Assembly (NCBI GenBank): GCA_025558095.1
Contig: JAIVFI010000033.1
Coordinates: 124,001 to 188,000, forward strand
Length of the DNA stretch: 64,000 bases
Reading direction: 5' to 3'
Source: Hyaloraphidium curvatum SAG 235-1
Taxonomy: Eukaryota; Fungi; Monoblepharomycota
Under the pieces are notes generated by a model, which saw only the letters and a list, made by a program, of their open reading frames with translations, made no database searches and was not told the origin of the DNA. The position numbers and the translations under genes were made by a program. Positions 42,330-57,105 of the stretch are shown piece by piece. Each line of letters opens with the position of its first letter. The first letter of the stretch is position 1.

Positions 42330-44615
42330 ATGCCGGCGTCCGAGCTGTCGTGGGCGCCAAAGCGGCGGCGGGCGCGGGGCCCCGGCATGCGCCGCTCGCG
42401 GTCGCTGGGCCGCGTTGCGTCGAGGGCCGTGCCGCCCCTGTTCCCGTTCCGTGCGGAGCGCCGCGTGCCTCCGCTCGGCGAGGCCCTCCGCGTTTTGGCG
42501 TTGGCGTTCATCGCCGCGACCCACCCGCGGCCGGTCGGCCTGCACGGGCCCTCCTTCCTGGCGGCTCTGGACGCGCGCGCAGAGGGACGGCCCCACACGG
42601 GCGACCCTCGCTGGCCGCGATTCTACCTGTCGCCAGTCTTTGAGGCTTTCTGGACGTACGCTACGGCGGCTGCCGCCCTGGCAAGCAAGGATCCCGCAAG
42701 GCGGGCCGCGCTCAAGCTGCCAATGCCCCTCCCCGACCTGGTCGACGCCCTGGAGGCGCGGCTCGAGGACGTGCTGGCCGCAGAGGTGGCCAGGTTCGAG
42801 AGGAACGCCGAAAAGACCGGCCCGGGACCGCATCTGCGCACGCCGGAAGCCTATGCCATCGTCTACGTGTGCAGCTTCGCGCCGTACCATCTGATGGCGC
42901 GCACGACCCGCACGGCAAACATTCGGGGCTTCATCCGCGTTGGCGCCCGCGTCTACCGCGCGACGCGGCTGCCGGGCGAGAACTTTGGGTCTGGGCAGGC
43001 TGATTCCGGCCCGCCGAACGCCGAGGACTTCATCTGGGACTGCTTCTGGTCGAGCGCCTTCTTCGGCCTGGCTTTCCACGACGCCTGGTCCGCCGCCGAC
43101 GCATTCGGCGCGGCGGCCACGCAGATCATCGACCCCGCCCTCGAATTCCCCGACGCCGAGATCCTGCCCCACGGCGGCATCTTTGATCGGCTGCCGGCCG
43201 CGGCGCTCAGGGACCCAAGCGCGCCGGCATCACCAGAGCTGCTTCGCGCCAGGTATGGAGTCTCTTGGCGGGACTACGTTGGATGGTTTGACCATCGCTA
43301 TTGCGACGCCGCGGACCCCGGCTCGCGCCTGCGCGCGCTCGCCCTCGTGCGCAACATGAAGGACTACGGCGCGCTCGTCACCTGCGGCATGGTGCTCTTT
43401 GTCCGCCTGGCCATCGAGGACCTCAGCACCTTCCTGCGCAGCATCGGCCTCTTCCGCCTGGACCTCCTCGTCGCCGAGGACCTCATCGCCAAGGGCCACG
43501 CCGTCCCCGGCCGCCCGCTGCACCCCCGGCCGCCGGTTCCGCCCCGCGTGGCCCGCCACCTCGACGTCGTGCTCTCCAACCCCGGCCTCCCCGAGGCCCT
43601 CCGTCGCAGCGCCATCGTCCGCTGGGCACTGGACGCCATCTCGATCGCCCTCCCCTCGGACCTCCTCTCGGCCATCCGCGCGGGGTCGTGGGACGATTTC
43701 GCCGCCTCCCTGCCCCCGCACTACTCTCCCGGCGAACGCTTCCAGATGCTCGGCTACCTGCCGTTCCTTCTCGAATCACGCACCGTCGTGCGCTGCCCCG
43801 AACCCTTCGTCGACCTCTCCTCAGACCCGGGCGCGCTGCACCCGCCGGACATCCGCTCCCCCGCCGGCGACGCTTCCATCCGCCCCGCAATGCTACGTCT
43901 CTGGTCAAGGACACGCGCGTTCTCCGAAGTGCCTGCCGAGGCCGGCGCAGCGGCCCGTATGGTGCGCATGATCCTTGATTCCGGTGGGCTCGCGATCGGC
44001 CTCGTGGTCGCCATCGCATGCCACGCCGCCGCCGTCGCCAGCTGGGCTCTGATCCTGACCGCCCGCGCCCTCGGCCCCGCCGCCGACCCGGGTGCGGCCG
44101 GCATGGTGGCTGCGTGCATGTCGATGCTCGCGGCCGGGGGCAAGCAGCACCGCGCCGTGGCGCTGCTCCTAGGGCGCGTGCTCGAGACGGGGTCGGTGGA
44201 GATGGGAGTCGGGGAGCTGGAGATGCTCCGTTCGGGGAGGCAGACGCGCCCCGCGTGCGGGCATGCGGGGGTGGGCGAGGTGGAGGGGGTGTGTTGGGGG
44301 TGCGCGATGGAGCGGATGGAGGCGTCGCGCGACGCGGAGGAGGGGGACGAGCGGTGGTCCGAGTCGGAGCGCGCGTCGGTGCTGAGCGAGGCGTCGGTCG
44401 GGACGGGGGCCAGCACCGCCAGCCTGGTTCCCGAGTCGGCGGCGGCGGCCGAGCCCGCGGATCCGGCGTTCGCGAGGCCGGTGTGGACGGTGCTGCACGA
44501 TGCGCCCGAGGAGCTGGCGAGGAGGATGCCGGCGCTGCGGAGGCGCGTGACGTTCTCGTCGGTCAGGGAGGTCTACGAGACCTTTTCGAGCGACGAGTTC
44601 CCGGAGGGGCGATGA
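42330..44615 (+). CDS. Hypothetical intronless ~760-aa protein with C-terminal PP1-docking-like motif
   Basis: Long ORF ending RRVTFSSVREVYETFSSDEF. Confidence 0.65.
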   Translation: MPASELSWAPKRRRARGPGMRRSRSLGRVASRAVPPLFPFRAERRVPPLGEALRVLALAFIAATHPRPVGLHGPSFLAALDARAEGRPHTGDPRWPRFYLSPVFEAFWTYATAAAALASKDPARRAALKLPMPLPDLVDALEARLEDVLAAEVARFERNAEKTGPGPHLRTPEAYAIVYVCSFAPYHLMARTTRTANIRGFIRVGARVYRATRLPGENFGSGQADSGPPNAEDFIWDCFWSSAFFGLAFHDAWSAADAFGAAATQIIDPALEFPDAEILPHGGIFDRLPAAALRDPSAPASPELLRARYGVSWRDYVGWFDHRYCDAADPGSRLRALALVRNMKDYGALVTCGMVLFVRLAIEDLSTFLRSIGLFRLDLLVAEDLIAKGHAVPGRPLHPRPPVPPRVARHLDVVLSNPGLPEALRRSAIVRWALDAISIALPSDLLSAIRAGSWDDFAASLPPHYSPGERFQMLGYLPFLLESRTVVRCPEPFVDLSSDPGALHPPDIRSPAGDASIRPAMLRLWSRTRAFSEVPAEAGAAARMVRMILDSGGLAIGLVVAIACHAAAVASWALILTARALGPAADPGAAGMVAACMSMLAAGGKQHRAVALLLGRVLETGSVEMGVGELEMLRSGRQTRPACGHAGVGEVEGVCWGCAMERMEASRDAEEGDERWSESERASVLSEASVGTGASTASLVPESAAAAEPADPAFARPVWTVLHDAPEELARRMPALRRRVTFSSVREVYETFSSDEFPEGR

Positions 44616-54101: not shown

Positions 54102-54771
54102 TACCCTTGAGGGAAGGAATACCCGGAACGGAAGGACGGTGCCTAAGCTAAACCAGGGTCGGGCCGCGATATCTTTGGTGGTCGATAAATTTCGTTTTTG
54201 CTGGCCGCTGCGTGCCCAGTTACAGCCTGGCCTGGCCGTTCTCCGCCCGGATCCGGTCGAAGAAGGCGCCGATCATGTCCCCCAGCTCGTCCCTCACGTT
54301 CTTGTCCTGCAGCACCCAGTGGCCCCCCGGCACCGAGGCCGGCTCGAAGCGCGGGATGAATGCCTTCATCCGGTCCAGGACGTCCTGCTTGGCAATCGGG
54401 TCGTGCGTCGGGATGACCTGTGGGTACTCGCATCAGCACAAGCGAGTTTGGGAGCGGCATCGCCGGGCGAGGCACCCACGCAGAAGACCGGCATCCCGAT
54501 CGTCTTCCCCATTATTGCCCGCTCGTCCTCCCAATCCTCCCGTTTCGTGCGGTAAAACTGAAGGCTGCCGTTAAAGGAACCCTGGTCGTCCTTCCACGTT
54601 CGGAAATATTCGTCCAGCTCGGACGACAGCATCAGCTTGGTCCGCGGCATGTTCGGGTCGAGGCCCTCGAAGTACGAGCGCGTCGGGGAGGCGAGCTTGA
54701 ACACGTTTACCGGCAGCCGCTCTGCGATCCGTCAGCGAAAAGCAGGACCGGCACGCACCGTGTCCCACCAT

Positions 54772-55952
54772 TGAAGCGCCGAACGCAGGCCGGCGCGCCA
54801 AGGACGTCTCCCATGACCCCGTGCTGTTTGCCAAGCAGCAGAAGCGGAAGGCCTGGGACGAGCAGAGGCGGGGCGCGAGGCGTGAAGCGGCGGCCGCTCA
54901 GGGCTTGACGACCTGGGAGGCCAAGACCGAGAAGGAGAAAGCCCAGGAGCTGCAGGCCACCGCCAACTCGAAGGCGAGGAAGCAGGAGGCGATCGAGCAG
55001 GGCCTGGTGAGTCACGCAGATGACCGGTCCTGATCAGCCGACGTACCGTCGCACAGCTCGCTCCCCGCACCACGGGCAACCAGCGCAAGATGGAATACGA
55101 CTACGACCTGTGCACCGAGCGCCGCATGCTCAAGGACTGGATCAGGCTTGTCCTGGTGGGTGCCCGCTTTCCCTGTCTGATGTCCTCATGCTGACTCTAG
55201 GCCAGTGGCTCGAGCAAGATGGCAAGTGCGCGGGCTGCGGTGGGCCGCTCGAGGACCTGATCTTCGACTGCAACCACGCACTGGACCAGGTGAATCTGAA
55301 CCGCGCCGATCTTCTCGCTGCCCATTACCCCTTTCGCTCCCAGAAGCAGTTCAGGCTCGCCTCAGCCAACAGCCGCCGAGCGAGCGACACCATACTCGAG
55401 GGGCCAAAGACGGACCTGCGACACGTCATCTGCCACAAGCTCGAGACCCGGCGCCAGGCGAAAGAAGGAGAGATCAAAGGCGGTCAGTCTGGTTACTCGC
55501 TGGGGAACGGGCCGGCTCAACAGAAAAAGTGATGTATTCAATCCAACCAGATCCGCAGTGGGCGCCGCCGTCCGAGAGGCCGACGAGGCGTAGGCGATCG
55601 CGGCAGAGTCTGCGCGGTCGACGGCGTCGGTGACGTCCGCGGGGAGGGCTGCGTGGATCAGGTCGACGGCCTCGAGGAGGGCCGCGCGGCGGCGCAGGGC
55701 CTCGGCCATGCGCTGGTCCTGTGCGGGGACGCCCCGCCAGGTGGGCCAGGAGGTCGAGCTGCCGCAGCCCGGCGGTGTCCCGCAGCCACGCCGAGTAGTC
55801 CGAGACCTTCTGCAGCAGCTGGGCCAGCGGCGGGTGCTGCAGCAGGAGGCCGCCGTCTTCCTTGATGCGGCCGAAGCACAGCGCGAGCACGCGGGCGCGT
55901 ACTGGGGGCCGGCGGCGGGGTCGGCGTCTGCGTCGCGCCAGAAGCGCTCCAT
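54772..55952. mobile_element. Insertion flanked by CCAT direct repeats, carrying an HNH gene and a degenerate convergent ORF
   Basis: CCAT at 54768-54771 and 55949-55952; interrupts the hydrolase exon; whether it is mobile is unproven. Confidence 0.7.
54773..55532 (+). CDS. HNH (His-Me finger) endonuclease-like protein, 5'-truncated, three introns
   Basis: Spliced WLEQDGKCAGCGGPL...FDCNHALDQ|KQFRLAS...EGPKTDLRHVICHKLET; introns 55007-55056, 55156-55205, 55290-55343. Confidence 0.7.
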
Positions 55953-57105
55953 AAACATGCTCCTCAGGAACAGCTCCAAATTGGCCGCGATCTCCGCCTC
56001 GGCGTCGTCCCGGCAGAAGTAGAGCTGGTAGTTGAGCCTCGACGTGATCTTCTGCGCCTCCTCCAGGCTCTGGTGCTCTTCCCGCGGCGGCTCGTACGCC
56101 GCGCAGATGGGCGCCACCGCGAAGCACCGCTCCGGGTAGTAGAGGACGAACCGCCACGCGGTGAAGGCGCCCCAGTCGTGGCCCACGACGTACGCCCGCT
56201 TCACTCCGGCCCAGTCCAGCAGCGCGGCGGCGCCGTCGCAGCGCGCCTTGGTGGAGTAGTAACGGCGGCGGGTTGAAATGTCGGCGTTGACAACCTGCGG
56301 GGCGATGGTGCGGCCGCAGCTGTGTGCAGATGGTCAGCAGGAGGCGGCGGCACGCGTCGGTCCGACGAACCCAGGAAAGTCGGGCACCAGAACGCGGTAA
56401 CCCCTCCGCGTCATGTGCGGCGCGAAATGTCGGTAGCCGTACGAGTGGTCGGGGAACCCGTGCATGCAGATCACTGTCGGCGTCGCGTCCGGCTTGGCCG
56501 CATCGAACCCGCGCGGCCGGAAGTCGAGGTAGTGCCACGTGAGACCATTGTGCGGGAACGTTGCCCGGGGGAGCGTGGAGGGGTCAAAGGGGTCTACAAT
56601 TGGGCCGGTTGAATGCCAAGGAGGGAGATGGGGTGCAGGGAGCGGTTGCCGGGACCGGGGAGGCACATGCCGCGAAGAGCGAGGGCGCGAAGCCGAGAGA
56701 CGGCTCAATCTCGCGGAATCGCGACGAGCGCGGAGAAAACGCACTGTAGCACGTATGCGGGGCGGACATGTCGGGCAGGCGCAACGTACGCGCGACGCGG
56801 GAGACGCTGGAGTCCGATTTTAGCCGATCGCGCCTGGCGTCTCGAAGGCTTCGACCCAGGGCTCGCCCGAATCTCTGCCCGATCACGGGCTGAACCCCGC
56901 GACGAAGGGCTCGATCATAAACAATACACCGCATCGAAACAATCTGCGTCTCCGCACCCGCACTCGGGGTGGTTCCCGCGCCGGCCATCGCCGCCCTCTC
57001 CAGCGACCGCACCGTCAGATCTCAAGCCACGTCCACGCGCACACCATCCGCGAGATCTCGAACGGGTCCGCGGCCTTGAGCGTTTCTGACGGGGCAATCA
57101 CCATG

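Follow-up and report, generated by a model that had tools for sequence, protein, structure and literature searches.

The alpha/beta-hydrolase gene described here lies on the minus strand of a 64,000-nucleotide stretch (the window) of contig JAIVFI010000033.1 from the fungus Hyaloraphidium curvatum SAG 235-1. It encodes an Abhydrolase_1 protein (Pfam) and is split between ~54772 and 55952 by an insert made up of pieces of three unrelated genes. The insert occurs once in the assembly, RNA contigs run across both of its junctions, and the hydrolase frame stops inside it. We infer, with moderate confidence, that the insert entered the hydrolase exon by a one-off complex capture or templated insertion at a chromosome break, and that this event inactivated the hydrolase. 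The source of the window was taken as H. curvatum, the N-terminal half of the hydrolase being 100% identical to the NCBI entry "Alpha/Beta hydrolase protein, partial" of this species, a model that ends at LRSMF. A preliminary description, made from the letters of the window alone, had read the insert as a single HNH endonuclease cassette bounded by CCAT repeats.

The insertion in the hydrolase gene

Contigs of a public sequencing run (X1) were taken as RNA because they skip GT..AG introns. They cross both insert junctions with 0 mismatches, and the junctions are therefore real in this strain. Over the right junction, one contig is continuous from 56319 to 55757 and extends at least 195 nt into the insert. 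On the other side, a second contig contains the exon at 54478-54721, lacks a 47-nt intron, and continues through 54769-55005 inside the insert. The hydrolase introns at 56320-56370, 54722-54768 and 54416-54477 are removed in these contigs, while no hydrolase form that skips the insert was found among the contigs of this run; splicing thus leaves the insert in place, at least in this strain. An intron reading of the insert was rejected because 5/5 cut positions in the 4-bp repeat lack GT-AG, GC-AG or AT-AC ends and RNA reads through.

Apart from the insertion the gene shows no defect: every hydrolase exon is still open, the motifs are preserved, and splicing is seen in RNA. On the minus strand, the first exon seen in RNA (56371-56593), supported by its open reading frame (ORF), Pfam and RNA contigs, carries the HGFPD motif and is followed by a 51-nt intron (56320-56370; RNA joint 56319 to 56371, CT..AC ends). 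The next exon (55941-56319) contains the GHDWG nucleophile motif and ends with LRSMFMERF; it is supported by ORF, Pfam and an RNA contig unbroken from 55757 to 56319 over the junction. Beyond the insert come the 47-nt intron (54722-54768; donor GTGGGA, RNA joint 54721 to 54769, CT..AC ends), an exon starting with (E)RLPVNVFK (54478-54721; present in an RNA contig, its DNA 84% identical to positions 973-1055 of contig L025 of a relative), and an intron of ~62 nt (54416-54477; RNA joint 54415 to 54478, CT..AC ends). The last exon (54220-54415), read from its ORF and covered by an RNA contig over 54282-54415, carries the motif of the catalytic His and terminates with a stop codon at 54220-54222. 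The hydrolase frame enters the insert and stops at 55362, and the catalytic Asp and His, which are encoded downstream of the insert, are therefore lost from the product of the N-terminal half.

A minus-strand ATG within the insert (54812-54814) shares its frame with the hydrolase exons downstream once the 47-nt intron is removed. It is speculative that the C-terminal half could in principle be translated alone from this ATG. The NCBI hydrolase model reads PGF|VVNAD at 56319-56371, and the RNA-supported intron 56320-56370 retains CGRTIAPQ in the protein. Because CGRTIAPQ matches CGKTVAPG of the relative, the public model has the wrong intron.

The relative is represented by a 1.3-kb Logan contig, L025 (ERR15093815; G+C 52%), which encodes a hydrolase orthologue with LRSMF, seven residues and ERLPVNVFK all in one exon. 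The gap between the two hydrolase halves is 12 nt in L025 vs. 1221 nt in H. curvatum. Since the L025 hydrolase is uninterrupted at this site, the insertion in H. curvatum is the derived state. In a 25-residue stretch beside the junction, 1 residue differs between H. curvatum and this distant relative. At the two H. curvatum intron sites that were compared, the L025 gene lacks an intron, and it has an additional one after RLNYQ; the two genes indicate quick intron turnover between H. curvatum and the L025 organism.

It is extremely improbable that the insertion is an assembly artefact joining unrelated reads. The genome does contain some redundant contigs, one of which (C53) duplicates window positions 30070-51151, but the RNA contigs that span both junctions without mismatch were made independently of the genome assembly. 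Positions 1-20658 of C53 are near-identical to this part of the window (99.7-100%, with one ~418-bp gap) and probably represent assembly redundancy or a haplotig. C53 was rejected as a haplotype with an empty site because 30070-51151 is the only part of the window duplicated and the contig ends before the hydrolase.

Composition and copy number of the insert

The composition was determined by searching the whole 31.9-Mb assembly with the insert. It resolved into homologies to three unrelated genes, namely a Cys/His gene on contig C25, an Amidohydro_3-family gene and a C42-type gene, and the notion of one cassette had to be given up. Each related locus is a longer gene, and homology ends where the insert piece ends. 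The largest piece (54773-55532, plus strand) is a 5'-truncated Cys/His gene running from codon 79 to the stop codon, with 77% identity to C25:431684-432432 and with introns 1 and 2 spliced in RNA; its exons are at 54773-55006, 55057-55155, 55206-55289 and 55344-55532. Abutting its stop codon is an amidohydrolase piece of ~58 bp (55534-55591, minus strand) with the motif LVGLSDGGAH. Its counterpart is a conserved stretch present in two paralogues (C23 and C10; 70% identical to each other); a core of 38-40 bp is 95% identical to both, and the alignment extends further. The C23 ORF matches PF07969 (Amidohydro_3) with E 2e-11. The third piece (55593-55940, minus strand) is an internal fragment of ~350 bp of a C42-type gene, with 74% identity to C42:78913-79242. 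Its counterpart lies inside an 856-codon ORF on C42, and deletions of 4 nt and 23 nt have shifted the frame of the insert piece. The C42-type family has at least 65 matching places in the genome and lies next to Fungal_trans regulators in language-model features (0.95), an assignment without support from hidden Markov models.

The nearest relatives in the assembly are thus at 77% for the Cys/His piece, 74% for the C42-type piece and 95% over a 40-bp core for the amidohydrolase piece, and none is closer. Among public proteins there is also no closer relative of the C42-type piece, the C42 protein itself being the only match. A single donor locus was rejected, since the loci on C25, C42, C23 and C10 are on separate contigs and neither of the other two genes occurs in the sequence flanking the C25 gene.

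The insert is single-copy in the assembly, and no other copy with its ends was found. This result, together with the absence of long terminal inverted repeats and the conflict of the CCAT model with splicing (see below), goes against a mobile element that bears an HNH gene and duplicates 4 bp of its target site, for which copies with the same ends and different flanks would be looked for. No inverted pair joins the insert ends. The insert also contains no tandem repeats, no Rfam family, no group I or group II intron, no transposase and no reverse transcriptase; Pfam and Rfam here bear out the first reading of the letters, which had seen neither a transposase, a reverse transcriptase nor a group I intron core. 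As a control, the same search with a 432-bp element located 254 kb away on the contig of the window gave 23 copies with 88-100% identity. Many copies of this element (C33:441760-442240) have one end in common and vary in length at the other, and it is, judging from its copies, a genuine and recently active mobile family.

Junctions and flanking repeats

GAAGCGC is present at 54773-54779 and 55941-55947, and CCAT at 54768-54771 and 55949-55952. These positions agree with the preliminary description, but its choice of CCAT as the boundary does not hold, since a stop codon follows once the observed splice is used. Its junction MVGH|ERLP requires a 37-nt intron with donor GTGCGT, whereas RNA shows the 47-nt intron 54722-54768 with donor GTGGGA. 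In the same way, deletion of 54772-55952 restores the hydrolase arithmetically but fails with the RNA-observed intron. When CCAT is the deletion point and the observed donor GTGGGA at 54768 is used, the protein reads MFMSGCR and then stops. If the 1168 bp that separate the two GAAGCGC copies are deleted instead, the protein reads MFMERFN|ERLP and stays in frame with the 47-nt intron seen in RNA; no other simple reconstruction does so. For this reason the best flanking repeat is the 7-bp GAAGCGC rather than CCAT.

In the preferred reconstruction the right copy (55941-55947) is native hydrolase sequence (codons ERF), an assignment that follows from the frame argument from RNA. The left copy (54773-54779) also forms the first bases of the C25-gene homology, where it aligns with GGAGCGC (6/7 match). 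Because the left copy continues the homology to the C25 gene, the 7 bp are read as microhomology between target and incoming DNA rather than as a transposase footprint. The chance of such a repeat is estimated at ~1-5%, and the repeat is at most suggestive. Neither the 47-nt intron nor the left flank has homology with the upstream part of the C25 gene.

The Cys/His gene

The plus-strand ORF of the insert had been described as split by introns, open to the left edge without an ATG, and truncated. All three points stand. Four exons were found, RNA contigs lack introns 1 and 2, and, compared with the C25 gene, the piece is without codons 1-78 and the promoter. The C25 copy is full-length, with 278 codons in four exons, and encodes a Pro-rich start, a stretch rich in Lys, Ala and Glu, and a Cys/His domain. 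These two are the only copies of the gene in the genome. Their intron sites are equal, intron 2 being 50 nt in the window copy vs. 51 nt in the C25 copy, and the frame in which it would be read through differs. DCNH and RH.ICH are invariant between the two copies.

Synonymous divergence (dS) between the two copies is 0.45, and the ratio of nonsynonymous to synonymous divergence (dN/dS) is 0.47 overall, 0.92 in exon 1 and 0.17-0.26 in exons 3-4. The 603 nt of exons in the window copy contain no stop codon and no frameshift, and two of the three introns are seen spliced (intron 3 is without RNA cover). The Cys/His gene is real: it is conserved and spliced, its Cys/His part is under constraint, and it is an orphan. 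Mutation of the repeat-induced point mutation (RIP) type was rejected as the origin of the 23% divergence, with transitions and transversions at 88/85 and the G+C content still high. On the plus strand at 55187-55261, a tract of 75 nt that runs from intron 2 into exon 3 has a single difference from C25. There are at most 4 differences in the best 90-nt interval vs. 23% elsewhere (P ~1e-6, or ~7e-4 corrected), a pattern which suggests gene conversion between the window and C25 copies.

The plus strand of the insert is still transcribed, with introns 1 and 2 spliced. One RNA contig (54282-55250) holds introns spliced on the minus strand (hydrolase) as well as on the plus strand (Cys/His gene), and thus represents overlapping antisense transcripts that were merged. 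In one RNA contig 54929 is followed directly by 55205; the 275 nt left out have non-canonical AG..CA ends, and the join may be an artefact of the assembly graph.

The HNH label is unproven, and the resemblance to HNH nucleases that had been proposed found no match at threshold. Homologues were sought with single exons or natural in-frame read-through stretches as queries. In Pfam (E up to 1) there was no HNH-type match, two unrelated DUF models appeared with E 0.11 and 0.16, and no family threshold was reached (PF01844, PF02945 and PF13392 were tested). The PHROG endonuclease VII profile gave sub-threshold matches (E 0.03-0.16) with exon 3 alone. No match was found among PDB sequences (E up to 10) or in phage genomes by tblastn, and HMMER over 1.84 billion representative proteins returned one spurious repeat protein and no homologue. 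The search with exon 1 was swamped by low-complexity words and gave no homologue, and back-translated motifs of exons 3 and 4 had 0 matches in metagenome and viral contigs. The language-model neighbours of the protein are all HNH clusters (0.89), a value under the level that the tool treats as more than a lead. AlphaFold2, run on the two-copy alignment with exon 3, intron 3 and exon 4 read through in frame, gave a mean pLDDT of 43.7, which is unusable.

The likeness to phage T4 endonuclease VII and HNH (His-Me finger) enzymes consists of CxxC followed ~10 residues on by D-x-x-H in exon 3, the R-H-x-I-C-H stretch in exon 4, and the sub-threshold PHROG matches. In contrast to those enzymes, the Cys/His protein has no significant profile match, no second CxxC pair and a much longer spacing, and it combines spliceosomal introns with a long low-complexity N-terminus. 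Its DCNH differs from DHDH in having Cys where DHDH-type enzymes carry the first His.

The sole full-length Cys/His gene also lies in DNA that interrupts a gene. At approximately C25:428380-432810, ~4.4 kb splits a carboxyltransferase gene: positions 2-101 of the Carboxyl_trans model match upstream and positions 150-236 downstream of the Cys/His gene, on the same strand and ~4.4 kb apart. One non-coding piece of this stretch matches four loci on C27 (72-82% identity), and the stretch also contains single-copy orphan ORFs that stand head to head with the Cys/His gene. The ends of the C25 insertion are unlike those of the window insert.

Age and source of the pieces

Between the C42-type piece and C42, dS is 0.52 and dN/dS is 0.42. 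With 8 paralogues as outgroups, 9 changes were assigned to the window lineage and 18 to the C42 lineage, with 11 undecided; the outgroups are distant and the test is rough. Because the window lineage has fewer changes than that of C42, and because exons 3-4 of the Cys/His piece have dN/dS of 0.17-0.26, the source copies looked like functional genes as far as such comparisons go. The event itself would be young relative to the 23-26% divergence of the pieces, since the hydrolase exons are open and spliced, the exons of the Cys/His piece are intact, and the 25-residue stretch is nearly identical to that of the relative. A young event would mean that the assembly lacks the source copies; they may be lost, unassembled, or from a foreign or related lineage.

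Explanations of the insertion

Under capture at a break, a chromosome break would have arisen in the hydrolase exon, and three unrelated gene stretches would have been joined end to end and sealed into it during repair. These would be the Cys/His gene from codon 79 to the stop, introns included, ~58 bp of an amidohydrolase gene, and ~350 bp of the interior of a transcription-factor-like gene. One junction would have been placed in the 7-bp GAAGCGC common to target and incoming DNA, by end joining or template switching at microhomology. The outcome would be a broken hydrolase, with the mRNA of its N-terminal half entering the insert and terminating there. Complex templated or captured insertions of several fragments with 0-20 nt of microhomology are documented in yeast, human and plants (PMC11724301). 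The insert resembles them in size (0.1-1.5 kb), in the direct joining of several homologous stretches from unrelated loci, in the microhomology (0-20 nt) at a junction (7 bp on the left), in the absence of terminal repeats and transposase, and in being a single event. The documented sources are identical, copied and pasted within the same genome, whereas here the nearest relatives are at 74-77%, and the source copies seem to have been functional genes. DNA capture at a break was one of the two readings put forward earlier; it fits the data, but with three unrelated longer related loci without common termini in place of one donor.

Several points weigh against capture at a break. No source closer than 74-77% was found by sequence comparison in the assembly (77%, 74%, and 95% over the 40-bp core), although documented templated insertions copy identical sequence from the same genome. 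The microhomology can be judged at the left junction alone (7 bp), the divergence from the sources hiding the other junctions, and the 7-bp repeat could equally be a target-site duplication. The RNA evidence comes from the contigs of a single public run, and the strain is probably the one whose genome was assembled. Both Cys/His copies lie in gene-interrupting DNA, a coincidence that is unlikely under random capture. Finally, dN/dS of ~0.45 for both large pieces with similar dS (0.45 and 0.52) also fits an old, neutrally decaying insertion. In that case the insert would have been copied from the present C25, C42 and C23/C10 genes and would then have drifted neutrally while the hydrolase stayed useful, e.g. 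via its halves or an unseen spliced form. The dN/dS value is about the mean expected of one neutral and one constrained lineage. We nevertheless regard an old insertion as very unlikely, because the relative-rate count points the opposite way (9 window-derived vs. 18 C42-derived changes), the 603 nt of Cys/His exons have neither stop nor frameshift and two of the three introns are seen spliced, and the hydrolase is intact while its mRNA enters the insert, with no skipped form among the contigs.

The other alternatives involve mobility. Both Cys/His copies lie in gene-interrupting DNA (hydrolase in the window, carboxyltransferase on C25), and for this reason a nuclease-linked element is kept in consideration as an unlikely but not negligible explanation. 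On this view the Cys/His gene would encode a diverged nuclease of the His-Me type (endonuclease VII/HNH-like) and would spread through break repair, landing in protein-coding genes and taking with it fragments of sites where it had sat before; the copy in the window would be dead and 5'-truncated. If so, which we doubt, it would be an undescribed nuclear, intron-bearing, free-standing element of an early-diverging fungus, entering genes via break repair with pieces of its former hosts. The endonuclease VII hints in exon 3 (E 0.03), the HNH language-model neighbours (0.89), and accompanying fragments that lack a genomic source and were constrained before capture are in line with such an element. 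A nuclear free-standing homing family is known in yeasts, the WHO/HO elements (PMC7282813), which bear on this explanation alone. WHO elements are likewise nuclear and associated with protein genes, and combine a nuclease gene with diverged gene fragments, but they carry fragments of their own target gene, which is kept working, and their target-specific nuclease is LAGLIDADG/intein-derived (PMC7282813). In H. curvatum the insertion breaks its host gene and carries fragments of other genes, and the nuclease is at most putative. The doubt also comes from the lack of any HNH, Pfam or PDB match at threshold, a fold that could not be predicted, and the Cys in DCNH at the presumed first His of a DHDH-type motif. 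Moreover, the two insertions share neither ends nor flanking content beyond the gene, their target sites are dissimilar with the host gene disrupted and not spared, and no homologue was found in 1.84 billion representative proteins or in metagenome and viral contigs. A homing gene inside a self-splicing intron or intein does not agree with RNA that reads into the insert from both sides and a hydrolase frame that stops there. Pack-type DNA transposons and Helitrons carry captured gene fragments, and the insert resembles them in being a mosaic of gene fragments, introns included, that is transcribed inside another gene. A non-autonomous cut-and-paste Pack-type transposon, moved in trans and now single-copy, would have either an 8-bp imperfect inverted end with a 4-bp duplication or a 7-bp duplication. 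The ends TGAAGCGC and TGGAGCGC are inverted with a 7/8 match and stand beside the CCAT repeats, and cut-and-paste movement would account for the missing second copy. We consider this quite unlikely. Most of the 8-bp match simply follows from the direct repeat around a palindromic GCGC core, terminal repeats of greater length are absent, no element family with these ends exists in the genome, the observed intron puts the 4-bp model out of frame, and the left "end" lies within C25 coding homology. Helitron insertion was rejected because the insert ends do not suit A|T insertion with TC...CTRR ends. Retained introns had been taken to argue for movement at the DNA level, which is reasonable, but copying of antisense or unspliced RNA remains compatible with them. 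In a chimeric retrocopy, the reverse transcriptase of a long interspersed element (LINE) would have primed at a nick, copied antisense or unspliced Cys/His RNA, then switched to amidohydrolase and transcription-factor-like RNAs, leaving a 7-bp target-site duplication. The 7-bp direct repeat and the active retroelements of the genome agree with this, as does the minus strand, on which the amidohydrolase and transcription-factor-like pieces are sense and the Cys/His piece is antisense, which would account for its retained introns. Such an origin appears very improbable, given that neither insert end has a poly(A), A-rich or LINE tail, all three introns of the Cys/His piece are retained, the amidohydrolase piece seems to extend a few bases into its intron, and the missing source copies are equally a problem.

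If capture at a break is the correct explanation, the insert would be a natural three-fragment break insertion in a zoosporic fungus, caught soon after gene inactivation, with a captured fragment that is transcribed and spliced. It would serve as a case study of how repair makes mosaic pseudogenes and possible new exons, an event of a kind that is not in itself surprising. Two features stand out: no piece has a source in the assembly though at least one evolved as a working gene, and the second Cys/His copy also splits a gene. Should these features recur across the genome, they would suggest either that DNA of a related lineage was taken up or that the genome harbours a new mobile element linked to a nuclease.

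A lineage-specific ORF family

Elsewhere in the window, positions 42441-44402 belong to a large lineage-specific ORF family with at least 40 other loci. Its members are ~750-1100 codons long and mostly single-exon, with 30-38% mutual identity. The family has no Pfam match, and its language-model features place it beside Fungal_trans regulators.

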